Assembly (NCBI GenBank): GCA_043228905.1 | Contig: JBHGNT010000015.1 | Coordinates: 15,748,001-15,812,000 of the forward strand | Source: Azolla caroliniana | Taxonomy: Eukaryota; Plantae; Polypodiophyta | DNA: 64,000 nucleotides | Reading direction: 5' to 3' | Part shown: positions 5,763 through 33,006 of the stretch, piece by piece | Layout: each line of letters opens with the position of its first letter | Position numbering within the stretch: position 1 is the stretch's first letter | Notes under the pieces: generated by a model | Seen by the model: the letters and a program-made list of their open reading frames with translations, nothing else | Database searches by the model: none | Told to the model about the DNA's origin: nothing | Made by a program: the position numbers and the translations under genes

Positions 5763-5887
5763 AATCTGGAACCGTAAGAACCGAGAGGACGAGAAGCCGA
5801 AGGAGCTACTTTCACTTCCCAAGCAATCTGGGGACTTCCGGAACCGTAAGAACCGAGAGGACGAGAAGCCGAAGCAGCTACTTTCAA
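5763..5887. repeat. Direct repeat pair (~50-bp core GGAACCGTAAGAACCGAGAGGACGAGAAGCCGAAG-AGCTACTTTCA)
   Basis: Two near-identical copies starting near 5768 and 5840. Confidence 0.8.
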
Positions 5888-5954
5888 TTCTTAGTGATCT
5901 GGCTTTTTTCTGGGGAGTTCCATCTTCATCTTCAAGTTTCAAATTGTTTTTGGG

Positions 5955-6062
5955 GGGTTTGGTTCGGTTTAAGTTACAATTTTTAATCAAAAGGTTCGGT
6001 TTAAACCGGTCCGGGTTTAAGGCTTTCGAACCGAACCGAACCGAACCGAACCGAACCGGTGC
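5955..6062. repeat. AACCG/CGGTT-rich repeat, probable subterminal remnant of a non-autonomous DNA transposon
   Basis: (GAACC)n run at ~6028-6057 plus GGTTCGGTTT copies; the same motif family occurs at 47720-48066. Confidence 0.5.
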
Positions 6063-6896
6063 TAAAAAGAAAGAAAGAAAAAGAGGAGGTGAGGAGAAGG
6101 AAAAGGATGTACTCTGTTTTTCTCTATGTATGAAAGATTTTTCCTGGAACCCAACAGAGAGAAAGACAGACAGAGACATAGTCAGAGCTTTTGGAAGAAG
6201 AAATAAAGAAAGACAGACAGACAGACTAGTCTCATTGCACACAGTAGTTCTCTTCCTCTCCTTTGTTTGTTTGTCTGTCTGTCTGTCTGTCTGTCTCAAC
6301 CATAAGATTGCTAAGCTCAGCATATTGCAGAACAGGAATAAAAAACAGAGCCTTTCTCAGCCATTGGTAGATACACACAGTAGGAGAGAGAGAGAGAGGA
6401 TTTAGAATCCATTAAGAATAAGAAGAAAGCCCAAAGTCCCCTGTTACTTCTTATTTGTTTTCTTTTCTTCAGCATTCGACCCATTGATTGTTATGGTTTT
6501 GTTTTTGTTGATCCATTGCTAGATAGAGCGATTGGAGATTGAGATATTAGGATTCACGGTGCCATTGATCAAGGGAGCTAGATTTGAGATATTTCCCTTT
6601 TCTTATCAGGACTCAAGCTGCCTTTGATCAATAAATATACTCGTTTTTTTTAATTCCTCAAGCAAAGAATTGAAAAAGAGCCCAAGGAATTGAGATATTA
6701 GGGGTTTTGATTTCTCAAACAAAGTATTGGATATCAACAAAGGAATTGAGATATTAGGGTTTTCAAGTCAACATTAAAAAGAGCCTAAAAGAACTGAGCT
6801 GTTTGATCATTTCTCTGGGTTCAATCAAAAATTTGAAAAGAATCAAAATTTGGATTGTGGGTTGAGTTTTCTTTGTTGATGTGGGGGATAAGTAAG

Positions 6897-9800
6897 ATGG
6901 ATCCTACAGCTTCTAAAAAGAAATCTCACATTGGGATGTATGAAGTCGGACGCACGCTTGGAGAAGGTCGATATGCAAAAGTGAAGCTTGGGCGGCACAT
7001 AGAGACGGGGAGCCAGGTCGCCATTAAGATCATGCAGAAGGATCGTCTCAGGAAGGCTGACAAGCTGGTCAGTCTTCTCCCTTTATATCCTCCTGAAAAC
7101 GCCCTAAAAACTAAACCTTGCATATGAAAACCCTAAAATTCAAAATGTTACATATAGGAAACCCCTAAATCATGTTGTTGTGGCTACTATATTGATCACA
7201 GGTTCGGCAGGAGATCTCTACAATGAAGCTCATAAAGCATCCACATGTAGTTCGACTCCTCGAGGTGAGCCAAGTAGAAAGGATTGGGCAAATTTATATT
7301 CATGAAAGCCCAAACGTAGACAATATCAACCTCTTACTATTTTATGAGTCCTAGAAAATTCTTGTAAAAATTCTGCAAATCTTTTGAAAATATTCATCTT
7401 TAGGAATGACACAAATTTTCAAAAGCCTTGCAAAATACGAAGCCATGTTGTCAAACGTTTTTCCTATTCTATTCCCCTTTGGGTGGGAGTTGAGGCATTT
7501 GGTGCTTTATATTGGTGGGCTTTAACCTCTTCTTGCTCAATGTCATGCTATAGGTTATTGCGAGTAAGAAAAATGTGTACATTATCCTCGAGTATGTTCA
7601 TGGTGGCGAGCTTTTCGATAAAATAGTAAGTTTCTCTTGAACCTGGACTAGTTTAAATAGTGAATTCTATCTTTGCATTGGCTGATTGATTCCTTTTACA
7701 CTTATGCCTAAAGGTGGAAAAGGGAAGGTTGAGTGAGGATGATGCACGCAAATACTTCCGACAGCTCATTCGAGGTGTAGATTATTGCCATAGCAGGGGA
7801 GTCTATCACAGGGACCTCAAGGTATTGTCTGAACTCAGTTATAAATGCTGGCTGTCTGTGCATTTTTTCTGAGATCTTGATATATGTATATACATATACA
7901 TTTATGACATTTGCATATTGCCTTACAATCTCTGCATGTTGTTGAGAGCTTGTCATATGTGTGTGTGTGTGTGTACGCGCGCACGCTCTGTGTGTCAAGC
8001 TATGCTAACGTGTCTTACTTTTTGCTTTGGGCAGCCTGAAAATTTGTTACTGGATAGCGTTGGCAACTTGAAGATTTCTGATTTTGGTCTAAGTGTTCTA
8101 TCTCATCAACAACGGGTATGCATTCTTTTCCATTTACATGCACATGTATGCTGTGAGGCTCCTTGAAATTTCAAAGTCTCTCAATACATGAACAGAAGGT
8201 CTTATGTTGACTATTGCACATTCCTAATATTGTGACTATTCTTTGTACAGGATGATGGCCTGTTTCATACCACATGCGGGACACCCAGTTATGTAGCTCC
8301 TGAGGTACTGTTCTTTTTAGTCCTACATTTGATTTTTGACAAAACGTTTCATTTGCAGAAATAGATTTATTTATGTACCTTCTTGTTTTTTACACACTTA
8401 TAGGTTTTGGATGGAAAAGGGTATGAGGGTGCCCCGGCAGATTTATGGTCCTGTGGTATCATCTTGTATGTATTACTAGCTGGAACATTACCCTTTAATG
8501 ATTCAAACCTTAGCAATCTATCATTGAAGGTATATAAGTTTGGATGCTCACCTTGATATGTGAGCACATGGGCAAAGTTAATTTATCTTGCTTTTAACCG
8601 AACATTTGTTACCTACTTGTGTTTGGTTCTAAATGGAGCTTGCTTATGCCAGATACATAAAGCTGAGCTTGATTTCTCTTCGACTTTCCCAACCGAACCT
8701 CGAGAGTTGATCAGAAAACTGCTGGATCCTAATCCAAAAACGGTAAGAGTATATTTCTTTACATGATTCTCATGCTTATTCCTGCTCTTTCTTACATATG
8801 TATATTTTCTATGTATGTTTTGGATGACAGCGCTTGACTATTCAAGGGGTATTTGAGAATGAATGGTTCAAGGCTGGGGAGTTGCTCGAGACAGAGACAT
8901 TTGATGACCTTCAATTGTGCCCTGCCATTGATGACGATGTAAAAACCAACTAGCACTTCATTAAGGATGTTTGTTGTGTTGTCTGCAATGCGTGTATATT
9001 TATATAATATTTGAATTTTGTATTTGTAAGTGTATGTGTACATGTACATACGTATACATACAGATATGTGCATGCACACATGTTTCATATTTATATGCTA
9101 CATGTATACATTCATGCACATATTTACATGATTACATAACATAACATTATATGTGTTGACATTGTTAATCATTATGTGTTGGTTTATCAGCTCATGCAAG
9201 ATGTGCCGATAGGAGATAGCAGACCTGTTCTGATGAACGCATTCGAGATCATTTTAGCCTTGTCAGAGGGTCTAGATTTGTCGGGGCTTTTCATTGAAAA
9301 AGAGGTACATATTTAAATGCCTTCGAATAAAGGATGTTGTCTCAACTTCATCATGAGCTGAATAAATTCATTGATTTTGTATGCAGGAAACACATAAGAA
9401 AGAAGCCAAATTTGCCTCCACGCATCCCGCAAATGAGATCATGCTTAAAATCGAGGAATTTGCCAGGGGCCTTGATTATAGAGTGTGGAGCAAAAATTAC
9501 AAGGTATAGTATCTCCGTTTATGATAGGAAAACGATAACAATTCCTGCTTTTGGTTGCAAACTATCATAGTTTTTTAGAATTGCCATTTGTTGATCAGTT
9601 ATGGAAAATGAATTTGTGAAGCCATTATTTCTACAAGAAAAGCGTCAGCAGAAGTATGAATACTAAATGCTTTTTACAACGCATACAACATAAGACTAGA
9701 AACATTGAAAGAAGAGGGTACACATGCACTCTTAGATATCCTTGGAAACATGAAAAGCATGCACGGATTGTGACTGAAAACCTGAATGCTCAATATGAGT

Positions 9801-10687
9801 GGGAATTAGATTGACCATAATAAATATCTATATTATCAGAGCCAGTGCTCAGAAAAAGGAGTTGCCATTCACTAAAAAATGGTGATTGAGAATTTGAATT
9901 TGTGGGATGGGAACAAAATCCTACAGAAATATGTGAAATTTCTGCTAGAAATCCAATAGAGTTTCTATTATTTCATAGCAAAGAGAAAAAGTCTGCTGAA
10001 CAATTTTCCAAAGATTGTTATCTATCTATCTGTATATATATAAATATTGTTATCTATCTCTCTATCTACATATGTTAACAATCTTATTGTCTCTATATGT
10101 GGGACTGTGTGAAAAGCATTTATGGTTATGCCAATATCTTAATTCTACTTATGTGTAGTGCAGATGAATCTACTGAGCTCTAAGCCAGGAAGGAAGGGCT
10201 TCATATCGATTTCAATAGAGGTACATAATGCAAACACTTTTGAGTAGAGCTTACTTACATATAACATTACTTCTCAGAAATTTAAGAACACACTGATTTA
10301 ATGTCTATCTATCTATATCTATCAACTCACAGGTCTTGGAGGTCACACCATCTCTGTTCATGGTAGACATGCACAAAACCAATGGTGACACATTAGAGTA
10401 CTGTGATGTGAGTAAACATTCAATGCAAACCTTACAAACTATAAAAGACCAAAAACCCTGAAAGCCCAAAATCTGTGCCCTAAACTCGAAACCGTTTGAA
10501 CCCTAACCCTAACCTTATCCCCTATAAAAACTAAACCCCAACCCCTAACTCTGAAACTTAATCTCTGATCTCAAAGTTCTAAGCACTAAAACTTTGTGGT
10601 TCTATTTTGCAGTTCCAACAAAAGCTGTCCGTAGGATTGAAGGACATTGTATGGAGGGCAGAGGAGACCACAGAGTCTCAAGTGTGA
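6897..10687 (+). CDS. CIPK: CBL-interacting Ser/Thr protein kinase (SnRK3/CIPK, intron-rich clade), ~436 aa, 14 exons
   Basis: Exons 6897-7067, 7202-7264, 7554-7625, 7714-7821, 8035-8115, 8251-8304, 8404-8529, 8653-8742, 8831-8938, 9191-9304, 9387-9503, 10164-10220, 10333-10407, 10613-10687; all GT-AG, phase 0. Motifs: [43 protein letters not shown], the NAF motif (MNAFEII) and C-terminal GDTLEY...LKDIVW. Confidence 0.95.
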
Positions 10688-12173
10688 TTTTGTTTGTCTG
10701 GATCATGCATAACTCCTTTGCCCACGCGGCTCAAATAAAAAGAATCCAAAGAGAAATTCACAAAGATAAAAAGCATCCGCAAAAGTCCGATTCAGGGCTG
10801 AGCAGCAGTGATGGATCGACAATGGTAATTTCTCGGGTCATCGAAATAGAAACACACCTGACATTTTGTACATTGGAATGAGTTTTCGAAGGCAAAACTC
10901 CCTTCAGACTCTGCATTTGTAAGAGGTGGTGGATTTGCAAACCCACACACGATTGAGTTCCTTTCTTTGTATACCTTTCCCATTATTCATTTATTCTTGG
11001 AAGGAGAGATTGGCTTCTAATTCTTCCTGACCATTCTACCACCCATCATAACCAGTGTGCAAATTGTTTTGCTTTTCTTGAGGTCATCGAAATTCATGAT
11101 AGCCCCCCATTCCGTACTTCCCTTGGTTGACTGTTTCTTTATTAATATGCTTCAAAAAAATAATGATGCTAATAAAAACGACTTGTGTTTGATATCAAGA
11201 CTTTTTGTGATGCTATGTTATATGCCGCCACAATGTGAACTTTCTTTTGAACATAACATGTGGATGAAAGTAGGAAAACTAGCAACAAGAGTAGATCATT
11301 TAGAGAAGTTATGTTAATCCATGTTAGTGTGTTCTTGATTGTCTTATAGTCACCTTTTGATGGGCATTGGATTTTTACACCCCTCAAGTTCAAACATTGG
11401 AGAGGAAACTATGCATCAAACGACAATGGGTATACATAAACTACATTGGACAAAACTGCAGTTATTAATGTAACTACACCTCACAAAGTGCTATATAGCC
11501 ATTTGAATACTTCATTGTGCACTTGAGATTGGATATAGAGAGGAAATTATTCTTGTATAACTATAATTGTAATGGAATGAGAATTGATGTTGGGCACCTT
11601 CAATATATCTTAATATCCATAAGTTCTCGAATACTAATGATGTACATATTATATATCCATGGGATTTGAGTAAAAGAGTAAGAGGGTGCATGGTATAATA
11701 TTGTTAGAGTACATACCATGCATCAACAAGTGATACATGAGGTATGTCCTTGAGCTTGGACACAAACGATGTTGAAAATGACTATGTAATAAAAATTTGT
11801 AGCACTACATGATTCTTTACTTATTTTCACTTGAGATGGTATGCATGTGGCTAACTTTATTGTTATGTGTCTATATTCACTTGGGATGGTATGTGGTGGT
11901 CATCCATCGCAATGTGCACATTTTGGGTAGCCATACACTCCACCATATTGGACTAAGGCCAATGGTGTACAAGGATACTCCATGGGGTAGACTTACATAC
12001 AAGGGGATACTAGATTAAATAAGATCAGAAATATTTACAATCAAGAAACCATTTATCAATTGGTTCATTCATTACATGCATGTTGGTTCATTGCATTCAT
12101 TACTTTGTTGAAACCAAAGTGAAAAAAATACTATATTTTTTCTTACTATTGCCTTTGGATAGGATATATACTA

Positions 12174-12456
12174 TGGAAAAGTACCAGGATATGCCTAGAA
12201 GTTCGTCTATTTACCAGAATGCCCCTAGAAGTTCCAAATTTACCAAACTACCCCTATGCCCAAAAAATTACACTTTATAAAGTAATTATACACTCAAATC
12301 TACAAGCCCTATTTACCAAAGATGGAAGAAATGGACTCGGACTAGCCTTATTTACCAAATATTTGAGTGTATAATTACTTTATAAAGTGTAATTTTTTGG
12401 ACATAGGGGTAGTTTGGTAAATTTGGAACTTCCAAGGGTATCCTGGTACTTTTCCC
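12174..12456. mobile_element. Mutator-like MITE (~283 bp) with long TIRs and a 9-bp TSD
   Basis: Ends (T)GGAAAAGTACCAGGATA... / ...TATCCTGGTACTTTTCCC. Inner ~75-bp near-perfect inverted repeat (~12225-12298 vs ~12362-12431). TATATACTA is duplicated at 12165-12173 and 12457-12465. Confidence 0.9.
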
Positions 12457-13220
12457 TATATACTATTATCTTTTGGGGGAGCATCTAATAAGTGACCCAC
12501 AATTCAGATTTGGCTACATAAAGAATTTGGTAAATAAGATAATTTAACTATACAAATCCCATTTTTCTTAATTGTTTATATGATGCGGGCACCAAGTGCT
12601 TTGAGTACCTATAGCTCCAAGTTTTGAGGCATTTGACATGTATTGAGAACATCAAATTTGCCAAAATTAGTATGTGCAAAGTACAACTCCCTTCCCCACA
12701 TGGTATCTCTTAATTAGGCACAATAGCTTTACCAAATGGAATATGATGGGCTCTCAAATTACAAATACATATGATGTTAGATTTGGGAAGTTGTGGGTGT
12801 AATGCATTCTTGACACATTTACATTTTCAGTTTTTTTGCGGCTGCACCATACATGAATAGAAGTCCATCCAACCTATTATTATGTGCCGTATGTATAACA
12901 CATGACAGTCCTAGTGTGTCTCTCAAACCATATAACACGATGATTAAAAGAGAGAGTAGAAAGTGAAGATTCAATGCATTTTCAGAGTGCGAAGAGCGCT
13001 AATGTTTGGCTAGATTCCAGACATTAGGGTTTGGGCGTTATCTAATCAATTATATCGAATTAGTGCATCGGTAGAGTGAGATCTTATTTTGTCATTAATT
13101 GTTGGTCGGAACAAAAAGTGTGGTCGATGTCTTGAGCATGTATGTGCCCATGAGGAGAAACAAGTTCTCATATTATCTTCTTCATTTTCACCTTTGTTTT
13201 GAACAACAAAAACCATAGCC

Positions 13221-13251
<31 letters not shown>

Positions 13252-13381
13252 CTTCTCCCATCTATGGATATGGTATATTCTTTTGATTCCCTGTCTTCTC
13301 CCCTTCTTTGGGTTTTTGTTCTGTTACCTCTTTGAAAAGCATTTTAGACGAATTAAGAGCAAAAATCCCCCCCCCCCCCCC

Positions 13382-16300
13382 ATGGGTCCTCTTGAAGCCA
13401 CACAGATTCTCTCCGAAGTAGGATACTCTGTTTTCCTGTTCAAAGATGGAAACAGAGCTCTACTTAACTCGAAGCAGAAGAATAAGAAGAAGAAGAAGAC
13501 AACAGGACGCATTACATGTATTCAGTGTTCTGTGTTGCCCTCAAAGAAATCTTTCCTTTTGGGGTTGTCAGAAGTCGGGCTGAAGAATTCATCTCTGAAT
13601 AATAACGTAGACTCATCAAGACCAAATTTCATCCCTTCCACAAGAAACTGGACAGGGGATAAGAACCTCTCCCTCTCTGATGTAGATAATCTGTTCCGAA
13701 GTCGTGACAAGGATTCTATTGGCTTCAACAATGATCGGCCAAGGGTGGGTAAATAACTTACATTCTTAGCTGAGATGTTTGCCAGACACAATCCACAATC
13801 CACAATCCACAAACCACAAACCACAAACCACAAACCACAATCCACAATCCACAATCCACAACCCACAACCCACAACCCACAATCCACAATCCACAATACA
13901 CAATACACAATACACAATACACAATACACAATACACAATACACAATGCACAATGCACAATACACTATACATAATATGCAATGTTGCTAACTATTGCACTC
14001 TCTCTTGATCCTCTGAATGGTAGGAAGACCACGGCTTTACAAGAAACTTCCCGCCCTCGATTGAGGATTTGGATGATAATCTACGTAGATTGTGGCCGGA
14101 GAAATTTGATTGTGGTGAGAAAGAATGTGTAGAAGGCTCTCCGTGGGATTGGCGGGAACCGTTGGATAGAGGTGAGAACCAATATATTGAAGGGTCTATA
14201 CCACATTGGCAAGAAACATTTAATAGAGGTGAGAAAGAATATATTGAAGGGTCTACATTGCATTGGCGGGAACTATTCAGCAGAGATGAAAAAGAATGCT
14301 TTGAAGGGTCTACAACACATTGGTGGGAACAATTTGATCAGGGTGAGAGAGAATGCATTGAACAGTCTACTCCGAATAATTGGAAACAATCTGATGGTGG
14401 TGAAAGAGAACATATTCAAGTATCTACTTCTGATTACTGGAAACAAATCAGTAAAGGTGAGAAGAAAGAATGTAATAAAGAATCTGTGTCTTATTATGGA
14501 CAGCAGATGGATAGAGATGAGAAGAAAGAATGTATTGAAGCATCTACATTGCAATACCAGGAACAAACTGATAGAAGTGAGAAAAAAACATGCAATGAAA
14601 CATGTACGTTGCATTACCAGGAACAAATCGGTAAAGCTGAGAAGGAAGAATGTATTGAAAAATCTAAATCTCATGGTTCTAGCGTATCTGAATTTCCATC
14701 ATTCGTGAGTCCTAAATCATTACATGGTTTCTCCCCTCAGTGCAACAGTGAAACCAAGTCAAAAACAATTTCTTCACATCTCCAAGATGCTGGGACAATT
14801 CTTGAAAGTGAAGAGTTGGGCAAATTCTTCCTAGATAAAGATGATGGCATAACTGTTACACAAGTTCTGGGTAAAGAATGGGTTCAAAGTTCCAACTTTT
14901 TTGAAAAACTGGGTCCTGATCCTTCCAGAAAATTAACTTTCAATTTGTGCAAGTTCAGAGTTTCGATACCAAAAGAGATGATGAAGTCAATGCCACCTCT
15001 TCCATCCAATGATCTTTTTCCAGTGCCTGATACCACACCATATTTCCACATTACAGCTCAAATGGTTGAACTACACAATGTAGAGCATGTGAATTTATGC
15101 ATAGATTGGCTTCTTCAAGGTAACCCAAGTATCGTTTCTCTGGTATGCAAACATGCTGGTGGTTTTCTTCAACTTATTCAGCTTTCAGTGCATGATCGAT
15201 GTGTGCTTATCAAAGTGTCTCTACCCATGGCCCCCTTTGCACCTGTGGTTCCTTTGAAACTTAGAGATTTGCTCTCAGATAGAGAGACTATGAAAGTTGG
15301 AGCAAACATACAAAAGGATGCTCTTTCCATATACTATTTCCTGGGAGCAACAAGCAACGGGTGTGCTCGTATTTCTCAGTTTGTTGGCACGAAAAAGCGG
15401 AAATCTGTTCTGCATCTATGCAGGTGAGGATTCAGAGTTTAAATTCCTTTTTCACCTTTTTATATGAATTGATGAACGTGGTTTGTGTGATGCCTATGGA
15501 ATTGGTACTGGCAGGGAGTTGTTTCACTGGGATTGGAGCGAGAATAAGAAAGTTATTTACAGTGATTGGGGATCAAAGGTCATCTCACTGGAACAGGTTA
15601 TCTTTCAGCATTTTTAATTTGTATGAACTGTAGCCCTTGGACGTGAGGAACGCTTCACCTTGCCAAGTCTCTGACTGCACTTCATTAGACGACAATGTCT
15701 ACATATATGTCTAACACAATGTAGCTTTTGTTTTAGATGCTCAAGCCTTAAATAGAGCAAATAACAAGGAAACCATGTGACCTAAGGCAGTTTTAATGCC
15801 CAAACATGATGCACATATGAATGCTTTATGTTTATAGGGAATGATGCTTATGTATTTTAGAGTTGGGCAGTAAACAGGAGCCTTGTAGGTGTTGTTTATA
15901 TAAGGGAACACTGAAACAGCCCCAAAGTTTTCCTTTTATCTCCTGATTTTTTGTTATTTCTTCAAATCCCCTTGCTCAGCCCCAAAACAATGAAAAAAGG
16001 GATGAATTGACAATATAATTGATAAATATCGACCTTAAAATCACTCACAGAACACTTACAATTTCTCTTTCAAGGGTTGACCAATGGCATTTGATGGGCA
16101 TAGGTTGGAACCATAAAGAAAGGGCAAAACTCAGGAGTATTTGAGAGTTTCTCCCTAATAGATATTATGATAGACGGAAGCATATGCATCCTTGTTGTGT
16201 ATTGTTTCTGGAAGACGCTGCTTGCAAAGTTCATGTTTTAAAGGGATACAAATGACACTGAAATTTACCTTGTAGGTGAAGCATGCAGTTCTAGAGGCTT

Positions 16301-18249
16301 GGACAACGAGATTAGTGTGGGTTGGTCAGTCACAACTTTGGCATGTACAATCGCCAGCTTTTTCGTTGGTAGAGTTTCCGTGGATACTATTAGATTACTT
16401 TGGAAGGTCTGTCTTTTCTTTTGAATTGCAAACCCGGAATGATGAAGTCATGTCAGTTGAGGTATGAAAAGAAATCTCTTCTTGTCAATAGGACTTTAGA
16501 AAACTTGAATGATTGACATTTATTTTGATACAGGTGAAGGGGGCAACAGTGGAGCTCCATGGAGGCCGTCTTAGTCTCAAGCAAAAGAATTTCAGGTCTC
16601 GAGTTATGGGACAGAATGCTTTAGTGGAGCTTCACTTCAGGGATGGTAGAAAACCTCAGAAATATGTCACTGTTTATAGAGAAGGTAGTAGGGTGGTCTT
16701 GGATGATGCTGAGGCACCCTCTGTCATCAAAAGAGTAGAAGATCTACAAGAAGAAATAGGCATGGTGAGCAAGATCCTCGTTGACAAAACCAACAACCAT
16801 GATGTGCAAAAACAAAAGCTCGAGGAATCTCTTTACATGCTATTATGCATACCTGGAGCATGCCCACGACACATTCTAGCGGCATTGGGATGCTTGCAAG
16901 GTAAAAACATGGTAATGCAAAGTAAGAGCTTTGGTCTCGATGCAGCTTGTGTGCAAAGTTGTAAGATGGGCCTTAATCCAGGTCAATCCAATGCATGGCA
17001 GTATATGCTATCGTCGCCCCTCTCTGCAGTTGTGGGACCTCCTGGAACTGGTAAGACCACGGTTATATCGGCAGTCACAAAAGCGTGGCTATGGCTAGCT
17101 ACTTCTGGAGAGACTCTGGTATGTGCTGCTCACCAGAATGTAGCAGTTCGCCACATGGCTGAGACTATGGCAAAAGAGAGGATACCAGGGCTCTTAATGT
17201 TGGTGAGTGCGGATTACTACGAAGGTTGGCATGAAGACGAGTATAGTGCGCAGAAGGAGATTTTAGTAGTTTCAGGATCGGCTCAAACCACTGCAGAATC
17301 TATTGAAAATTGGGTTGCTCGGAATGGTGGGCAGCCCCCGAGGGTGTTGCTTTGTACGCTTGGTTTGATTGGGAATGACTCTTTCCATGCAAGCTTGATG
17401 GGGACTAGGGTCTCAGCCATGATCATTGATGAAGGGTCACAGGCTGGCGAAGGAAGCCTGATACCATCTTTGGGAGCATTACCACATCTTCAAATGCTTA
17501 GTGTTGTCGGAGACCCATGCCAACTCCCTCCTTATGGATGCCGACAGCGCCCCATCCGAAGTGTATTTGATTTGCTAGCCCAGAGCTGCGAGATACATGT
17601 GCTGCAAGAGCAATATAGAATGCCATATCGAATAGCTCAGTTTGTTTCCGCAGAATTCTATGGAGGAACTTTGCACACTGATGCGAAGAAGATGAGGCAA
17701 GACTCAGATATGGCACTTATTTGGGTGGATGTGACGGGTAAAGTAGAAATTGCCACATCTGGGACATCACTAAGCAACCGAGAAGAAGCAGAGGCAATTA
17801 TAGAGTGGTGTCAAGCTCGGAAACGTCATAATGGTGGAAGATCGATGCCACGGGGGAAAGTGGTGGTTCTCACTTTGTATGAAGCCCAACGAAGTCTTAT
17901 AAGTGGAATGCTTGATGAACAAGGAATGGGAGAAGAGATCATTGCATACAACGCCGACTCTTTCCAAGGCCAAGAGGCTGATGTGGTGCTTGTCTCCCTC
18001 GTGGTCGGGGCATGGGTATCGAGTTTCGCTGCAGATAGACGGCGGGCATGTGTCCTTTTGTCCCGAGCCAAGCATGAGTTGCATTTGTTTGGGAACTTGG
18101 AGGCCATTCAGGGCAAATTCAGCACGTTAAAACATAGTACTGAAAATAGTAATATATGGACGACATTGGCCGAATATTGCATGCAGCATGGCTGGGTTGT
18201 CAAGAGATGTAATCTTGAATTGCTTGCTCATTCATTTGGAGACATCTAA
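13382..18249 (+). CDS. Upf1-like superfamily 1B helicase fused to a degenerate DEDDy 3'-5' exonuclease domain and an N-terminal tandem-repeat region, ~1248 aa, 5 exons
   Basis: Exons 13382-13744, 14024-15423, 15515-15596, 16276-16461, 16534-18249 splice in phase. Helicase motifs: LNPGQSNA (Q), GPPGTGKTT (I), AHQNVAV (Ia), IIDEGSQ (II), VGDPCQLPP (III), LQEQYRM, DSFQGQEAD (V), RRACVLLSRAK (VI). Exonuclease-fold motifs: LIQLS...CVLI, PLKLRDLLSD...KVGANIQKD, SDWGSKVISLEQVKHAVLEA. Start codon and exon 1 are less certain. Confidence 0.85.
13787..13965. repeat. Compound heptamer microsatellite (ACAATCC/ACAAACC/ACAACCC/ACAATAC/ACAATGC) in helicase intron 1
   Basis: ~25 consecutive 7-bp units are visible; they explain the low-complexity ORFs 13522-14008. 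Confidence 0.95.
14093..14674 (+). repeat. Coding tandem repeat: six 19-aa plus four 20-aa units (consensus ~W/Y-x-EQ-x-DRGEKECIE-x-ST-x-H)
   Basis: Read directly from ORF 14069..15427; 57-bp and 60-bp DNA periodicity. Confidence 0.9.
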
Positions 18250-18941
18250 TAAAGAGAATTGTGTAATTAATCAATTGTATAAGACAATAAAATAGAATCA
18301 ACCATTAGAGAAAGTGATGTTTACTTGGTTGATACAAATATATAGCACCCTGTACTGATCCTTGTTCTTCTGGCACAAGGGCAAGGGCTGAAGATATTAT
18401 TGAGTAACTTTGGAAAAGGGAATGATTGTGGGAAATACTCAATTCGGATGGGAGCTAAAAAAATGATGCAGATTCCATAGTACATTTGATGCCTATAAGA
18501 TTTGTGAGTATTATTAGTGCTAGCATTGATGATGGGCTTGGTATTTGGTCTCCCATTGGTGTCAATAACATCTCTATCTATCAATCTATCTAGTCAAATA
18601 AATGTCTACTATTGTATTGCAAATTTGGCCTCAACAATTTCCTTTGTAAAGGACTTGATTTTGATGCGGTTCTCACTCTTTCGATGCAGTATCTTTTTCG
18701 CCATTGCCATGACAATTTTGAAATGTGCACCAATTGCTTTGGAGAGGATAAAGTGCTTGATTTTAAATTCTTTTGTTGGCTTGTATGGTGTTGTCTACAA
18801 ACCATTATTTCTTGAAGATAGAAATGTAGATTGTTTTATGTCCATCGTCTTCATATTTTAGTATTGATCTCGGTAGATTGATCATGTCCTTTGAAGTGTG
18901 CTTCTTGTTACACTAATGTTCAAGGAGCACAACATGCCCTT

Positions 18942-19418
18942 TTCTATGATGTTCGAGTATGTAATCCCTTCATTCTAGGTCTTGTGGTTGTCTCTTATAA
19001 TAATAGTTTGGGCTTGTCTACATGGTCACCCAAACAAATGTGAAAGAGCTAAGACATGATTCTATGAAAGAGATATATGACACTATTGTCTTCTCTCAGT
19101 CGTGTGAGTGTGGAGTGTATCTAGACCTCTCCATGGCTTTTTATCTCAAGTAAAGAGTGACCAAACATATATATATATATATTCTATGATGTTCGAGTAT
19201 GTAAGCCCTTCATTCTAGGTCTTGTGGTTGTCTCTTATAATAATAGTTTGGGCTTGTCTACATGGTCACCCAAACAAATGTGAAAGAGCTAAGACATGAT
19301 TCTATGAAAGAGATATATGACACTATTGTCTTCTCTCCGTCGTGTGAGTGCGGAGTGTATCTAGACCTCTCCATGGCTTTTTATCTCAAGTAAAGAGTGA
19401 TCAAACATATATATATAT
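18942..19418. repeat. Recent tandem duplication, 240-bp unit x2
   Basis: TTCTATGATGTTCGAGTATG... at 18942 and 19182; only a few substitutions; each unit ends in (AT)n. Confidence 0.95.
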
Positions 19419-20696
19419 CGCATTTCTAGACTTTGAGTTGTCAAAGGGTAGGTTCTTTGAAGACTCAATCCTTATGAGATATGCATATGCCCTCCATTGA
19501 CAAGGAAAATGCATGTTTTTGCCTATGATATATGCATATGCTCTCGATTGACCATAATAAGTGCATTCTCTCTGAACTTGATTGTCTATCAACCAAACTC
19601 AATGTCATTAAAGCAAGTAAACCAAATATTGCTAAGGGATTTACAATAATTAAGTGCCAAGAAGGCAAGACAACATGATGAGCTATTGAAATCATAGTAG
19701 GAACCATAGTATGTACTATGAACCATGTGTACCATACGTGCATTTGCATTCGAGAATGTTTCAATCACTCGAGTATGGTAAATACCATAATTTTGTATTC
19801 TTTATTTATTATAAGGTAAAAAAATTTTAAGTGAGAAAATTAAGGTAAAAAGTGTAAAAAAAACATAAGAATGTTTTGATAACATACGCATTCGTATGAA
19901 AAAGAATGTTTTCCAATGCATTCGAGTGTATTACGTATTATGGTATGAACCATATGAACCGTTCGCATTCAAAGTATGTTTAGATCATTCAAGTATGGTA
20001 AAGACCCTTGAAGTAAGGGAAATACCATACTTTTGTATTCATTATTTACTATAAGGTAAAACTTTTTTTAAGGTAAAAAAGTGTGAAAAAAAATTTAAAA
20101 CATCCACAAAAAAACATAAGTATGTTTTCTTAACATACACATTCATTTTCAAATATATGAAAACGAATGTTTGAGCAGAAGGATGAGAATATTATGTTCT
20201 ATGATTGAAATAGAGTTTTCAACTTGAAGCAACTCTATTATCTTCATATAAAAAAGACCCAAGTTTCCAAATCCCCAAAACATGAACCAAAAGTCAACGT
20301 TGTTGTCTTAATTCTTGTGGGATCACTTGTAAACATGTTCCTTGCACAAGATCACGTGTTGGTGTTTGATGACTGAGTGGGCCCAAATGCAAAGTGTGCG
20401 TTAAGTGTTGTGCAAGAATATATGTGTTTATGTCACGGTGAACTAGTGTTACATGTATATTCTTATAAACGTGTGTATTCTTTATAGGCAAGTCATCCCA
20501 AAATTTACAGTGTGTATTCCTTATAGGCAAGTCTACTAAATAATCAAATGTTGCATACAATAGATTGTAAACGTCGAGATGCAAGTCATCCCAATTTTTG
20601 TTGTTTTCTTTTCTAGAATCTCATTGAACAATTATATCAAAATTTATGCTTGGCTCTTTGGTGACCGGTGGAAAATCAAATTGGGATAAGCTTCAA

Positions 20697-20890
20697 GATG
20701 AAGTTGTGTAAAGCTAGTGAAGAGTTGCCCTAATCAAACATCAACATTTGGATAACAATTTAAATCAAATATCGCCACTTGGATAACAATTCAAATCAAA
20801 TATGAGCACTTGGATAATAATTCAAATCAAATATTGACACTTGGATGAAGTTATATAAAGCTAGTGGAGAGTTGCCCTAATCAAATATTT
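20697..20890. repeat. Minisatellite: ~31-bp units (CACTTGGATAACAATTCAAATCAAATAT) flanked by a duplicated ~45-bp segment
   Basis: Three to four units at ~20745-20846; GATGAAGTT...AAAGCTAGTG-AGAGTTGCCCTAATCAAA at ~20697 and ~20844. Confidence 0.8.
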
Positions 20891-20934
20891 ATGGTCCTAA
20901 CATCCACAATCAAAGTTGTCAATGATAACACACT

Positions 20935-22718
20935 CCACGTAGATGACATTGTCTTGCTCTCGGAGTAGGAACATGACCTACAAAAGTATCTTAATGCCCT
21001 AGATGACTTTTGTACACAACGAGGATTGGTGGTGAATCTAGCAAAAACTAAAGTCCTTATCTTTCATACATCATCTCGAGTTAAGAGTAAATGTCACCTA
21101 ATCCTCTCTCATAAACTAGTTGAGGTAGTTGGATCATATGTATACTTGGGAGTCACTTTTAGTGCTCGCTCAGGTAAATTCTCGATGACCTAGGCAACCA
21201 AAGATAGGCTAACGAGAGGGTATGCATCCCTCTCACTCTTAGAGAGACAATGCCACCATGCATACTTTCAAGAGCCACAGACTAAGGGATGTCTCTTCGA
21301 CTCATTAGTGACCCCTTCCCTCATGTATGCATCAGTAGTATGGGCTCCAGGTCTACCATCTTTCATGTGGACGCAATTAGAGAGACCTTTGGTGACAATG
21401 TTATCATCTCAACTCCGAAGCAAATCGACATTACTACATGACATTATTAGAGCAAAGTTTAGTTTGCCCCTAATGTTAGTAGAAGCATTTTTTCAAGTGG
21501 TAGTTTTTATTCATCGGATACATAGCCAACAACAAGATAGGATATCCGTCGAACCTTTGAGGCATCCTGAACCCTACATGCGTCTGGAGACACTAGCTCT
21601 TGGTATGACACTATGGTGAGTTGGTTACTTGCAAACGGCATAGACATTAATAACCTACCTCCCCTTAAGTACAACCATGGGACTGATCAAACTCTAATAT
21701 CTCATGAAGACCGTAACAAAGTGATACGCCAAGAAATATGGCAAATTTACACTCGATATAAATGGATCACCCCACGAGAGCCACTCCCATCTAAAATGTT
21801 GTACTATAACGAACACTTCTTGCACTTCTCTAAGTTAGGTTTTATTACATGACCAAGATATCTAGATACATTCTTATCAAATGCACTAAGGGTGGCCATT
21901 GGACAACTTAGGAGATCATCTCACCAACTTGAGATTGAGAATGGTCGGGCTAATAGAGTCCCTAGAGAGGAAAGGCTATGTAGGTTATGCCACATAGAGA
22001 TAGAGGATGAGTATCACTTCACATGCAAGTGCCCAACTTATGCTGAGATACGGGCGGAATACCAAGAGATATTAGGACCCTCTCCCACCCTCTCCAAACT
22101 ATTAGATACCCCGGATGTAAAGAGACTAGGTAGGTATATCTTAGAGCTAAAATAACATAGGGAGAATAAATTACAAAGTGTTAACTATAACCCTTTTACT
22201 ATTCATCATGTAACTAGTGTAATTTTTCAGGAACAAGGGGAGACGATGAATGTGGATATACTTACGTGGCTCAGCCTCTCTCTTAAGGAAGCATAAATGC
22301 AAATGACAACTAAATGCCCTTGGATGTTGGGCTTCAAAACAAGTCAACACGGAGTAGAAAAGATTAAGAAGATAAGGGAATGTGAGCTACATAAAGTAGA
22401 AGCTATGGTTGGGGTACCTTTCACATTGGGACCATGGACCACATCCACATCGAAACCCTTTGACCTCCCGCTTCTCTTTGAGAGACTTGGATGGAAATGA
22501 AAGTATGCCTAGTATAACATCATTTTCATTGTAAAACATGTTTTTTATATAGAACAAGGTTGTTATTTTACTAGAATTATTTAGCTTAAAACTCTATTTT
22601 TATTTTTAATTTTTACTTTTGATGAATGGGTAAATATCCCATTTTTTGTTGTAAACCATTTGTCTCATGGGCCAATTTTGGCCTTAGAAGACGTTAATAT
22701 ATCTTTCTTTCTTTCTTT
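20935..22718 (+). mobile_element. 5'-truncated, decayed RTE-clade LINE (RT C-terminus, Cys/His domain, 3' UTR with TCTT tail)
   Basis: (Y)VDDIVLLS...LNALDDFCTQRGLVVNLAKTKVLIF, YVYLGVTF, then QLRRSSHQLEIENGR...ERLCRLCHIEIEDEYHFTCKCPTY. In-frame stops are present. Ends GGCCTTAGAAGACGTTAATATATCTTTCTTTCTTTC. Confidence 0.85.
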
Positions 22719-23619
22719 CCAATGACCCGAATAAAATATACATTTAGCCCACATTTATTGTGGATGATATCAAATTTGTCCTAATGCACATGCATGTTTA
22801 TTTATTCTAGGGCCCTACCACATGACTCCACGCTCTTTAGTAACCTAACCACGATTAATGACCGATGCCAATGATTTCAAGCCGCACAAGCATGTGCGTT
22901 TATTCCAGTGTTCCACATTAATTCACATGGTCAATGTCAATGATTTATTTCATGGCACAAATGCATGGTCGATTGTTTGAGTTGCCAATATCAAGTGATG
23001 AAACTAGCCATAGATAATAAGAGCCTTGAAAAAGAAAAAACAAACCCCATGAATAATCGATGTACGAGAAGCTTACTGATTGCCCCATGATCTCAGGGCA
23101 GGAATTTGATCAATGGTTTTGCGGCAGATCGATAGGAGTTTCTGGCTCAAAACAAACTGGTCGGGCCGGGCCCAAAGGTACGACCGGCCACAGATCGATG
23201 GTTTTGTGGTCCGTGGTACAATCCATTGGTTCTGTGGCCAAGTCAATACAAGTTTCGGACGCAACGAGGGATTGACGGCATGATTCATGTTTTTCGCGTA
23301 GACATGTCAGCAGAATCCAAAGGAAATGGAATTTCGATGCTTCAGAATTGGGTGGAGTGGCCATAATCCAGCATACAATTGATATATATAATAACCCAAT
23401 TCAATTCTAGGTGGGAGTGTCAGAAATTGGATTTTGGTTTCTGTCTGCTTCTGTCTAAGCTCATGTGTTGACCAAAGATGTAAATATTTATGGCTTCTTG
23501 TTCTTAAACAAAATGCTGTTTCTGTAGTACTCGAAAGGACGATCGAGTATGTGTACGGATCCTGCTTCACCCATGTTTTTGTAGAAGGAAAGGAAAGGAA
23601 AGGAAAGGAAGAACAGGAC

Positions 23620-26600
23620 ATGGAGAGATGGGCAGGATCAAATGAGAGGAAGACATATTCTAAGCATCTTCTGCACAGGCTTCATAGCTCTTGGAAAGAC
23701 AAGCAAAAGCCTCTGGACCGCACTATTGACTTCTGGAGACGATCCATCTGGGTCTATGCAAGCTATAAGGTATTTAGTATTTATATATATCCTTTTTTTG
23801 CAAATTGCATAAAATCATTATATATATATATATTATCCCCTGCATGATCTGTGTTTAGAATCGTTTGTAATACATGAGCTTATGTGGGCACAGGAGAAAT
23901 GCATTTTTTCTATAATAAAAAAGCTCTACTCAAAATGATATGTTTGTTTGAGTACATGATACCTTCACTTGAATTTGACTGCCCTCACCCTATCTGTATG
24001 AATATATAGAGTGTGCATCCTGATCATGCTAAATAAAACATGTCTAGGAGAATCACTCACAAAATATCTGAAAAAATATCATGTGCAAAAGGGTTCAGAT
24101 ATGTTTTCTTTACTACTCGCCTGGGTGCCCGTTTACATGTATGAAATCATAGAAAAATGATGTGAACATTACCACAAAACCTGAAGCAAGTGTAGAAAAG
24201 TTATATAAATCAGTAGTGGATTTTATTGGCTTCATAAATATTTCTAGATTCTCTCCATTCAACCCCCTTGGATAATGTAGGTGTGTTTAATCAACTGTAT
24301 TTTTTATATACATCTTATTGACGTGTGGGAATATATATGGTTTCCATTTGTAAGCGCACTATGTATTACTTTCTTTATTTCATTTCAGATTTGCCAAGTG
24401 CATACTCAATTTTTACACAAGGACAAGCAAAATATAGTATGGGAAATCCAGCATGAATGGGCAGCTGAAAAAGTATATGACTTATGTTCTGAACTTGGAG
24501 GCTTCTTTTTGAAGGTTCATTTCTATTTCTGAAATATTGGATTTTTCCGATTAAAAAACCTGGTGAATGAAATCTAAGGAATTTGTTTTTGACAACCAAG
24601 GTAGCACAAGTGATTGGCAAACCAGATTTAGCTCCAGATGCTTGGGTCAAGAAATTGGTGACACTTTGTGATGCTGCACCAACAACACCATATTCAACTA
24701 TAATTCATGTTTTGGAGCAAGAGCTCGGGATCCCAGTAGATTTACTCTTTGAGGAATTTGACAAGAACCCAATAGGCTCTGCATCGGTGGCACAGGTGCA
24801 AAACGCGCACATGCACATATTTTCTCTTCAGTTAAGCACGTTAAAAACATCCACAGTATATACTTTACAAAGGATCTCTAGGCATACTCACATCATATAA
24901 ATGACAATATTTTTGCTGTAATCTCTTGTTGAGTGATACAGGTCATTCCCTAAACCCTAAACCCATATTTTGTTCTCTTTTCTTTTTAGGATGACTATTC
25001 CCCCCTGAATTGGATATTATCCGGTATAACACACTTTCTCTCTGGGATCAGATTCTCCCCTGAATTTTATGATATATCATTTATCACACAACTCTCTTGA
25101 TAGACTTATCTACTACCAAAATAGTTCTTTCATTTGCTTGTGAGGGTAGTTTTTTGCATTTTCATACTATTACATTGCAGCTTTCAGATCTTTTTGTATG
25201 GAGAAGGTATAATACATTATTGTGACTATGATATTTTGGGTTCCTTAGTCCAATTTTAGAGACTTTGATCTGGATCGACCTATGCTAGAGATCTTTTCAA
25301 GACAAAATTATAGTATATCTAACTTGAGAATCTCACATGTGCGGAAAACCAGATTCTTTAGCCTCTTTTTATCTTATTTACTTTTATATTTACTAGTAAT
25401 ATTTATTTTATTTTGATTTTTTGTTCTCAAAGACGAGACAACACTTAGATGTAATTTCTTGTTTCGTCTTATAGACCATTTTGGCCTCTTAAAAGACATT
25501 AATATATCCTTCTTTCTCTCTCTATCAATGATTGCCCACATGATAAAGAGCAAAGCATCGGTGCCCCATGATATAATCTTGCCATTGTAGGTGCTTCCCT
25601 TGCTTCGGAGACCTCTCCATTTTGGATCGACCTATGATAGAGATATTTCGAAGACAAAAGTTACAATATATCTAACTTGAGAATCTCACATGTGCCGAAA
25701 ACCAGATTCCCTTGTCTCTGTTTATCTTATTTACTTTTATATTTACTGAGTAATATTCATTTTATTTTGATTTGTTGTTCTCCAAGATGAGGCAACACTT
25801 AAGATATAATCTCTTGTTTGGTCTTATAGGCCATTTTGGCCTCTTAAAAGACGTTAATATATCTTTCTTTCTTTCTCTCTCTCTCTCTCTCTCTTTCTAG
25901 TGCGATATGTTTAGTTCTATTTATTTTGGGTTTTTGTTCTCAAAGATGGGAAAACATTGTAAGATGGTATCTCTTATAGGAGATTCTGGCCTTTTAAAAG
26001 GCATTAATGTAGTTTTCTTTGTTTATTTTGAATGGTTGTGAGTATACAATGGTGTGCTTGATTAGGATATTTTCAAATCTCGAGAGGAAGATTCAAGGGT
26101 TGTCAAAGTCATTGCATTATGCAGGCACAAATGCCTTTCCTCACATCAGAATCAGCAATGCATCCATGTGGTGTAACTACACGAAATCGTTGGTATGATA
26201 AGAAATGTTGTGATTAAGGAAACACTTCCAACAGGAAATGACCTGGAGGATTTGTACATATTATATATTGACAAACAAGATCAAACTTCCAATGGCTGGT
26301 GAGGAAGAAGAATGTATCATATTTGGCTAAATATGCAGCAGAGGTATACAGGCTGTTATTAGGACAAGAAAGTAAACAAACATGGAAAATGTTTAATGAG
26401 AGGAAGCCTAATATACACAACTGACCTCACCACAGGCTTGACATAAATATGCAAAGATACTCTTTGATTCCTCCCCCACCCACATTGCTCATACCACATG
26501 GAATCCACCTTTTTTGTTCCACAAAATGTGTGAAATACCAGTGACCAGTTAAAATTTGTAAAGCCCCAATGGATTTGTTGGTGAGGATTTTATCTATGCC

Positions 26601-32600: not shown

Positions 32601-33006
32601 TCTTAATGTCAATGCTAAATACTGATGAATGGTGTAGACACAGTTTAATATGGAAGTTTGTATTGCAGAATTTCCCAAAGGAAATGTTCTTTGTGCTTAG
32701 GACAATACAGATATTGCGTGGGTTAAGTGTTGGCATGGGAATATCGTATTCTTGTGCCGAAGAATGGCGAGAGTTAGCAATGGAAGCCTTGTCCACATCA
32801 AATGACAATGATCAAATGATCCTTAAGGGTGGGTATTTCAAGTGTGCAACATCTGATGCATTTACATTGTTTAATTTTTAATCTGTCCATTGTGAAACTT
32901 TTGGTAAACATTTACAGAGGAATCTAGTTCAAATTCGCGTGCAAAAGATGCAAGGGAGCTTATTTGGAAGAGGAAGCGTAATCGACGTTTGTCATGGTCT
33001 CGGTGA
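23620..33006 (+). CDS. ABC1/AarF (ADCK/UbiB) family atypical protein kinase, 12 exons
   Basis: Exons 23620-23769, 24389-24514, 24601-24795, 30061-30108, 30205-30333, 31090-31217, 31396-31506, 31713-31821, 31931-32049, 32293-32446, 32669-32828, 32918-33006. Motifs: LGGFFLKVAQ, PIGSASVAQVHRA, VAVKVQHPG, EFDFVREA, FFQADPHPGN, LLDYGQVK. Confidence 0.92.
25255..26030 (+). mobile_element. Head-to-tail cluster of short RTE-tail elements (SINE-like or truncated LINE), about three copies
   Basis: Repeated TGGATCGACCTATG-TAGAGAT...GCCATTTTGGCCTCTTAAAAGACGTTAATATATCTTTC ending in CT tails; 25528-25580 encodes RTE-like IAHMIKSKASVPHDII. Confidence 0.75.
26640..27100 (+). mobile_element. RTE LINE reverse-transcriptase fragment (pseudogenised) in ABC1K intron 3
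   Basis: Conceptual translation NNYRTRMLGHFLAKLYGLILNSELSV*AEKDG...GFQKRFTTLNHIL...YCCFMIFWKT. Confidence 0.7.
27300..28650 (-). mobile_element. Ty1/copia retrotransposon fragment (GAG-pre-integrase and integrase) with internal duplication
   Basis: LWHARFGHLN, CVACLHGKQH, ELVHMDLCRPM, YFMLIIDDFS, TPQQNG-like, FWGEAVNTAVY, KVFGCDAYVHI, FLGYS...KAYRLWD...ISRDVHF. Confidence 0.9.
29795..30045 (+). mobile_element. Diverged copy of the short RTE-tail element
   Basis: GCTTCCCTTTCTTCGG...TTGTTTGGTCTAATATGCCATTTTAGCCTCATAAAAGATGTTAATATAAATTTCTTT. Confidence 0.65.

Follow-up and report, generated by a model that had tools for sequence, protein, structure and literature searches.

A predicted fern fusion of a degenerate DEDDy exonuclease-like domain and a Upf1-like helicase, and its place in an old, uncharacterised eukaryotic family

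Introduction

Nuclease-helicase fusions, among them WRN, Dna2 and HELZ2, have central parts in the maintenance of genomes, in RNA decay and in innate defence. In a stretch of 64,000 nucleotides from the fern Azolla caroliniana (contig JBHGNT010000015.1; below, the window), a gene on the plus strand at positions 13382-18249 appears to represent a fourth combination, in which a DEDDy exonuclease-like domain is followed by a Upf1-like helicase of superfamily 1B (SF1B). Judged by its sequence, the gene is an intact member of an old, uncharacterised eukaryotic family of such fusions, and the exonuclease domain of its fern members is very probably catalytically dead. How does this arrangement compare with the systems already described?

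By analogy, human HELZ2 comes closest in function among the proteins in the literature. Its Upf1-like helicase domains and RNB exoribonuclease cooperate in degrading structured RNA (PMC10516660), and it is interferon-induced and acts against LINE-1 (PMC10516660; bioRxiv 10.1101/2022.03.26.485892). Like the present family, it carries Upf1-like SF1B modules and a 3'-5' exonuclease on one polypeptide (PMC10516660), and one algal member of the family, P0008 of Edaphochlamys, even has two helicase modules around the exonuclease domain. It differs in its nuclease, which is RNB and not DEDDy, and in its zinc fingers; the similarity is confined to the helicase core, and the fern nuclease is degenerate.

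WRN provides the best structural match to the N-terminal domain, and in both proteins the exonuclease lies N-terminal of the helicase, but the WRN helicase is an SF2 RecQ enzyme of 3'-5' polarity, whereas here it is Upf1-like SF1B, and the WRN exonuclease is active. Dna2 is also a nuclease-SF1B fusion, with a helicase core among the top fold matches; its PD-(D/E)XK nuclease, however, is unrelated to the DEDD-type domain found here, and it forms a separate clade. EXD1, which acts with TDRD12, and Egalitarian share the fold and have kept the domain while losing its catalytic residues, and the inactive DEDD domains of both serve as RNA- or partner-binding modules. Their partner helicase or motor acts in trans, whereas here it is on the same chain, and neither is an orthologue. 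Among solved helicases, UPF1 is nearest in sequence and shares the layout of 1B barrel, stalk and domains 1A and 2A, but the window protein has a different N-terminus and no CH zinc-knuckle domain by Pfam, and UPF1 sequences form their own clade with 99-100% support. One further candidate, the fusion of a helicase with an inactivated family B DNA polymerase in polinton-like viruses and Tlr1 (PMC5499653), was rejected: the gene here combines an RNase D/WRN-type exonuclease with a Upf1-like helicase, it contains introns, and its plant orthologues are old.

Gene structure

Translation of the window DNA gives five exons in one continuous frame of 1248 codons (121 + 494 + 62 + 571 over the exon blocks) with zero in-frame stops, and all four introns have GT-AG boundaries (Table 1). 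An earlier interpretation, made from the letters and their open reading frames (ORFs) and called here the sequence-only reading, had proposed five in-phase exons encoding a single protein of about 1248 residues. The exon number, the single frame and the length stand; the phases need correction, in that intron 2 is in phase 2 and the other three are in phase 0. The arginine encoded by the codon that intron 2 splits occupies a position that is invariant in ferns and nearly invariant across the family. The stretch directly upstream of the start codon is probably a 5' untranslated region (UTR).

Comparisons were made exon by exon or with database orthologues rather than with one joined window protein. 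Exons 2, 3, 4 and 5 correspond to positions 2-191, 193-219, 220-281 and 282-323 of the family exonuclease profile, with neither gap nor overlap, and alignment of the exon translations with orthologues shows zero missing or extra residues at every junction. The nearest orthologue, P0155 (74% identity over exon 5), lies on three contigs of 3.5-4.1 kb from three sequencing runs, each of which contains a single unbroken ORF of 3279 nt. Since the window gene has four introns, these contigs are best read as spliced transcripts, and as such they show the fusion to be expressed in a related fern. By all these comparisons, the locus is one intact five-exon gene that fuses an exonuclease-like domain to a Upf1-like helicase.

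Exonuclease-like domain and helicase module

Pfam found zero matches in exon 1 and in exon 2 alone, the domain extending beyond exon 2. The C-terminal part of exon 2 is matched well by the family profile (Table 1), and exon 2 still reaches 67.5 bits when the profile is restricted to members outside the ferns with an intact catalytic site. In whole proteins of the family, PF01612 (DNA_pol_A_exo1; cut-off 23.6 bits) is matched by P0001 (53.6 bits), P0162 (44.1), P0168 (38.7) and P0008 (44.7), and the ferns of the second paralogue clade, clade B, score slightly under the cut-off at about 22 bits. Exon 3 is 74-78% identical to the closest orthologues, P0162 and P0155, and 41-70% identical to other members. 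A sequence search with the exonuclease domain retrieves the solved structures of NrnC, EXD2 and the WRN exonuclease; a profile comparison of the fern exonuclease region with one basidiomycete N-terminus gave a probability of only 3%.

AlphaFold models were made for the orthologue P0155 from family alignments. The full model (854 residues) has a mean predicted local distance difference test score (pLDDT) of 76.8 and a predicted template modelling score of 0.73; the N-terminal model has a pLDDT of 69, with the exonuclease part mostly above 80. The N-terminal model superimposes on the WRN exonuclease over 173 residues with a Z score of 17.8 and a root-mean-square deviation of 2.8 Å (Foldseek E about 1e-9), followed by RNase D (Z 16.9), RRP6 (15.8), Nibbler (15.2), Egalitarian (14.3) and EXD1 (14.1). 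The WRN/EXD-type exonuclease fold that had been proposed is thus seen in the orthologue's model, and the N-terminal domain is predicted to adopt the RNase H-like fold of RNase D/WRN-type (DEDDy) exonucleases.

Exon 5 is matched by AAA_12 at 1e-31 and AAA_11 at 3e-17 in Pfam, the two matches scoring 110.5 and 63.8 bits, and reaches solved UPF1 chains at 4e-22 in a sequence search. Motifs I to VI are all found, so that the complete SF1B helicase named in the sequence-only reading is borne out: the window protein, on its sequence, carries a complete Upf1-like SF1B helicase with every motif intact. Residues 252-839 of the P0155 model match IGHMBP2 (residues 3-644, Z 30.4) and the UPF1 core (residues 295-906, Z 29.7), and the full model further matches SETX, Dna2, ZNFX1, Aquarius and nidovirus nsp13. 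In the model, stalk helices and a 1B beta-barrel precede domain 1A, as in the Upf1-like layout. These begin where the exonuclease fold ends, so there is no real linker, and the short linker proposed earlier is essentially absent; in the window gene the boundary between the two modules falls inside exon 4.

Catalytic residues

Is the exonuclease-like domain still a nuclease? To compare the catalytic positions, 27 exonuclease or exonuclease-like domains of the wider family were aligned into a residue table, which was checked against two further alignments. Active members carry D-x-E at ExoI (D-T/V/C/A-E among intact members), where the window gene has V-C-K; all ferns of both paralogue clades have V/S/A-C-K at this site and keep the ExoII Asp. 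The window retains this Asp in a Q-K-D context, and the residue is invariant across alignment A2. At ExoIII the family has Y-x3-D, a motif whose Tyr all 15 family rows in alignment A1 share, and the window has K-H-A-V-L-E, with His and Glu at the two positions. The exonuclease is therefore degenerate, as the sequence-only reading had held, lacking both the ExoI D-x-E and the ExoIII Y-x3-D.

D-x-E, the ExoII Asp and Y-x3-D are all intact in Edaphochlamys, Pleodorina, Tetrabaena, Gloeochaete, Geranomyces, Phlyctochytrium, the Calypogeia protein P0168 and several environmental proteins. Volvox has intact ExoI and ExoII sites, and its ExoIII stretch failed to align. The second liverwort protein, a giant Ceratopteris paralogue and several fungi are degenerate too. 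Because an intact DEDDy site is found in most non-fern members, the family probably goes back to a functional exonuclease-helicase, and the simplest reading of the residues is that the fern lineage lost the ExoI Asp and Glu ahead of the duplication that produced clades A and B. The ExoI carboxylates hold two catalytic metals in DEDD enzymes. With both of them replaced, the fern proteins are very probably unable to bind two catalytic metals, meaning that the fern exonuclease domain is very probably catalytically dead.

Family membership, distribution and phylogeny

An exhaustive HMMER search of exon 5 against 1.84 billion representative proteins returned a small set of strong matches (E 1e-238 to 1e-43), the next matches having at most 37% identity. 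The strong set contains KP509_04G052000 and KP509_35G005800 of Ceratopteris richardii, GOP47_0022066 of Adiantum capillus-veneris and several proteins assembled from sequencing runs. Additional members are KP509_26G072400 of Ceratopteris, GOP47_0013632 of Adiantum, L7F22_057545 and L7F22_056937 of Adiantum nelumboides, and two proteins of the leafy liverwort Calypogeia fissa. The window's full-length protein itself was not found in the protein collections searched. In every full-length member, a single chain carries both the exonuclease-like region and the helicase.

The family exonuclease profile also places the domain on the N-terminal side of the helicase in numerous proteins of a sister group. 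These come from chytrids (Geranomyces, Phlyctochytrium, Quaeritorhiza, Thoreauomyces and Spizellomyces), volvocine algae (Volvox, Pleodorina, Tetrabaena and Edaphochlamys) and the glaucophyte Gloeochaete, with weak, degenerate matches of the family hidden Markov model in other fungi (Neolecta and several basidiomycetes). The architecture had been suggested to be lineage-restricted; its presence in two fern clades, a liverwort, volvocine algae, a glaucophyte, chytrids and other fungi contradicts this. No member from seed plants, mosses or Marchantia appeared in any homology search, which were not a full census, and we regard this as good evidence that the family has no close seed-plant orthologue. 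Such an absence would account for its having escaped plant genetics. A literature search with the fern locus tags and with the terms exonuclease-helicase, Upf1-like and DEDDy found no paper on the family, and its named database entries are labeled only "hypothetical" or with a generic helicase name.

In the helicase-core tree, the family forms a clade with 97% support in the Shimodaira-Hasegawa-like approximate likelihood ratio test (SH-aLRT), and its land-plant part has 100%. This clade lies apart from UPF1, IGHMBP2, DNA2, Armitage, Hrr1, Aquarius-like proteins and a grass DUF6469 helicase, and the protein is not an orthologue of UPF1, DNA2, IGHMBP2, MOV10/Armitage, Hrr1 or Aquarius; nor did the homology searches return any seed-plant protein with the same architecture. 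These trees are quick searches with SH-aLRT support only, long branches and an unknown root, and SETX, ZNFX1 and SDE3 were compared through their solved structures. Ferns have two paralogue clades, A and B, and the window gene falls inside clade A beside P0155. Hence, its sequence places the window gene in an old, uncharacterised eukaryotic family of exonuclease and Upf1-like helicase fusions.

Several members show unusual architectures. In Edaphochlamys debaryana, P0008 (HYH03_012079) has two exonuclease-helicase units in a predicted protein of 2096 aa, and the contig bears a further copy, P0043 (HYH03_012074), at a distance of five locus tags; this is a local tandem cluster in a green alga, or possibly a fused gene model. 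A third, giant fern paralogue is represented by P0004/P0164 (Ceratopteris richardii KP509_35G005800, 2837-2994 aa), in which about 1900 residues without a Pfam match precede an exonuclease-like domain at 1965-2281 (ExoI V-C-Y) and a C-terminal helicase. P0009 is a member with a degenerate exonuclease-like region from the chytrid Quaeritorhiza haematococci, which lives as a parasite on the green alga Haematococcus.

N-terminus and repeat array

The basic N-terminal stretch KQKNKKKKK is present as described, coded by a microsatellite. Exon 1 shows weak, colinear similarity to residues 52-152 of P0155 (30% identity over 112 aa). Ten tandem repeats had been counted; they lie in exon 2, where nine are full units and the tenth is degenerate. 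Units span 19-21 aa around an acidic, Trp/Tyr-bearing consensus (approximately G-E-K-E-C-I-E-G-S-T-x-H-W-x-E-x-F-x-R), and Tandem Repeats Finder (TRF) reports periods of 57 and 60 nt with 74% matches, the units diverging by about 26% at the DNA level. P0155 has only one unit (S-W-W-E-Q-V-N-G-G-D-G-E-C-I-E-G-S) between the same flanking sequences, indicating that the window array is a private tandem amplification. The repeats and the lysine run thus look like recent additions to the window copy, produced by tandem amplification and microsatellite growth. Among the units, dN/dS is about 0.46 in the coding frame versus 0.75 in a shifted frame, suggestive of mild constraint. Along with the lysine run, the array probably makes up a disordered region for interactions.

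The Calypogeia protein P0168 (1697 aa) has long Lys/Pro-rich tandem repeats of its own, at the N-terminus as well as in the stretch that separates the 1B barrel from domain 1A. They are unrelated to the window array and were gained independently, so repeat gain may recur in the family.

Proposed mechanism and alternative explanations

A domain that has lost its catalytic residues and is still conserved, next to a helicase with all motifs intact, leads us to infer an active helicase with a pseudo-exonuclease binding module. As a whole, an intact gene of an old family with this division of labor is the explanation that we consider likely. The ancestral enzyme would have linked unwinding driven by ATP to 3'-5' degradation, in the way that HELZ2 does through another nuclease fold. 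In the fern lineage, the ExoI Asp and Glu would have been replaced before the two paralogue clades split, and the window copy has additionally lost the ExoIII Tyr and Asp. The fern protein is predicted from its motifs to be an active ATP-dependent helicase or translocase, and its pseudo-exonuclease domain may bind a single-stranded 3' end or a partner protein, binding that would recruit or regulate the helicase motor.

Several observations weigh against this explanation. The window gene model was drawn from genomic DNA and relatives' sequences rather than from RNA of the same species, and of the 18 sequencing runs from 8 studies that share 14-30% of words with it, none is on record as RNA. Every repeat unit begins with the splice-donor-like GGTGAG, so splicing could remove part of the array. 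The folds are those of the orthologue, P0155 being 51% identical to the window protein in the exonuclease part and 74% in the helicase. Loss of nuclease activity is read from residues alone, and HELZ2 is reported to be active despite losing one key catalytic residue (PMC10516660). The window copy breaks 6-7% of fern-invariant columns, compared to 0-3.7% for each other fern in a leave-one-out comparison, and its terminal branch measures 0.24-0.31 against 0.05 for its sister P0155, a difference of about fivefold, indicating that some relaxation of constraint is possible. Finally, dS values of about 1.4-1.5 for exons 2 and 5 approach saturation, which makes the dN/dS values against P0155 (0.20 for the exonuclease part of exon 2, 0.24 for exon 4 and 0.107 for exon 5) rough.

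These points bear on three rival readings of the gene itself. That two adjacent genes were wrongly merged is very improbable: the helicase core does sit in one long exon behind the 72-nt intron 4, and this exon could form an ORF by itself, but the Upf1-like module already starts in exon 4, the exons tile a single profile gaplessly, and in every orthologue, transcript contigs included, a single ORF covers both parts. A paralogue that is decaying or has recently come under relaxed constraint, and is turning into a pseudogene, would account for the long terminal branch, the loss of the otherwise invariant ExoIII Tyr, and the microsatellite- and repeat-driven insertions in the coding region. We nevertheless judge it quite unlikely, given 1248 codons without a stop or frameshift, canonical splice sites throughout, intact helicase motifs and dN/dS of 0.1-0.24; moreover, 103 of the 106 family-invariant columns are kept, and among the three changes only Tyr to His is radical. 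Both the exonuclease and the helicase parts are under purifying selection, and the window copy is best described, from these values, as a constrained gene that evolves faster than its relatives and not as a pseudogene. It is similarly improbable that the fern domain works as a nuclease with an altered set of catalytic residues. The invariant ExoII Asp, the ExoIII Tyr and Asp kept in many ferns, the strong conservation of the domain and the activity of HELZ2 with a substituted key residue (PMC10516660) are all compatible with such an enzyme; every fern, however, has a hydrophobic or small residue and Lys in place of both ExoI carboxylates, and the window copy is also without the ExoIII Tyr and Asp. 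An intact gene with a dead exonuclease domain remains our preferred reading.

Two more rivals concern the origin of the gene and the site of action of its product. Chytrids and basidiomycetes are among the closest named non-plant relatives, which would suit a horizontal gene transfer from fungi to land plants, but the sister clade mixes green algae with fungi, a glaucophyte branches nearby, and vertical descent within Archaeplastida with many losses fits at least as well; we hold a transfer to be unlikely. Nor does an origin of the helicase by retroposition fit, given that its module already starts in exon 4, that algae and fungi share the fusion partner, and that liverworts belong to the land-plant clade. 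Import into plastids or mitochondria, with action on organellar DNA or RNA, is conceivable though doubtful. The first 50 residues of the fern proteins are Ser/Thr-rich, acid-poor and mildly basic, like transit peptides (a comparison of composition only), and Upf1-like helicases also include DNA-acting ones such as Dna2. On the other side, these N-termini are not conserved in sequence, the window lysine run looks more like a nuclear signal, and plastid-less chytrids carry the family too.

What, then, might the pseudo-exonuclease helicase do in the cell? On rough estimates, RNA is a somewhat probable substrate, and a role in surveillance or defence, suggested by analogy, deserves clearly less credence. 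Housekeeping RNA processing or decay would be about equally plausible as defence, and a DNA or organellar role somewhat less so. The silencing, antiviral or transposon-defence role put forward in the sequence-only reading may be suggested by analogy with HELZ2, MOV10/SDE3 and EXD1-TDRD12. A bolder proposal, which we regard as speculative, sees in the family an ancient eukaryotic enzyme for the surveillance of nucleic acids or for defence, a counterpart of HELZ2 with a DEDDy nuclease, which would unwind and break down RNA that is foreign or aberrant. It would have been lost from seed plants, animals and most yeasts, and its nuclease would have become a sensing or recruiting domain in ferns. If this were true, the fast branch, the repeat amplification and the tandem copies in volvocine algae would be marks of an arms race.

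The family forms a natural series, from apparently active members in algae, chytrids and one liverwort to conserved members with a dead nuclease in all ferns, and this series could show how a helicase reuses a pseudo-nuclease. Ceratopteris and volvocine algae are tractable for knock-outs.

Feature coordinates and genomic surroundings

Table 1. Coordinates of the gene, its motifs and nearby repeats, in window positions
Feature	Position	Strand	Remarks
5' UTR, putative	13222-13381	+	(CTT)n at 13222-13256; C15 run at 13367-13381 abutting the start codon; TRF and sequence
Exon 1	13382-13744	+	121 aa, weakly conserved N-terminus
Lysine run KQKNKKKKK	13472-13498	+	coded by (GAA)n microsatellite 13471-13499 (TRF)
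Intron 1	13745-14023	+	279 nt, GT-AG, phase 0
(CACAATC)25 microsatellite	13787-13964		in intron 1; 95% matches; yields long spurious ORFs on both strands
Exon 2	14024-15423	+	motif, repeat array, first half of exonuclease-like domain
Start of exon 2	14024-14113	+	motif SIEDLDDNLRRLW (14057-14095) common to clade-A fern orthologues; BLASTP against P0155, P0152 and P0153
Tandem repeat array	14114-14698	+	six 19-aa units, three 20-aa units, tenth degenerate
Exon 2, C-terminal part	14804-15423	+	conserved beta-strand lead-in and first half of exonuclease-like domain; profile 192.6 bits
ExoI, V-C-K	within 15137-15157	+
ExoII, Q-K-D	within 15305-15325	+
Intron 2	15424-15514	+	91 nt, GT-AG, phase 2; split codon AG/G, Arg
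Exon 3	15515-15596	+	27 codons of exonuclease-like domain, including S-D-W motif at 15561-15575
Intron 3	15597-16275	+	679 nt, GT-AG, phase 0
Exon 4	16276-16461	+	last exonuclease-fold helix, then start of Upf1-like module
ExoIII, K-H-A-V-L-E	16282-16284; 16294-16296	+	His codon; Glu codon
Upf1-like module start, LLDYFGRSVF	16387-16416	+	in exon 4; UPF1 and IGHMBP2 align from P0155 model residue ~252
Intron 4	16462-16533	+	72 nt, GT-AG, phase 0
Exon 5	16534-18249	+	571 aa and stop TAA at 18247-18249, which AATAAA overlaps; 1B barrel, stalk, RecA-like 1A and 2A
Motif I, GPPGTGKT	17035-17058	+
Motif Ia	17125-17148	+
Motif II, DEGSQ	within 17422-17442	+
Motif III, GDPCQLPP	17509-17532	+
Motif IV, QYRMP	17611-17625	+
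Motif V	17959-17982	+
Motif VI	18034-18072	+
240-bp unit in tandem duplicate	18942-19418		237 nt, 98% identical
Weaker periodic repeats	19772-20153		240-251 bp

The surroundings offer no informative gene context, since the eight longest neighboring ORFs, within about 13 kb on either side (1-13000 and 18500-34000), gave zero Pfam matches. The tandem duplicate begins about 700 bp 3' of the stop codon, and each of its two copies holds the same 43-codon ORF.

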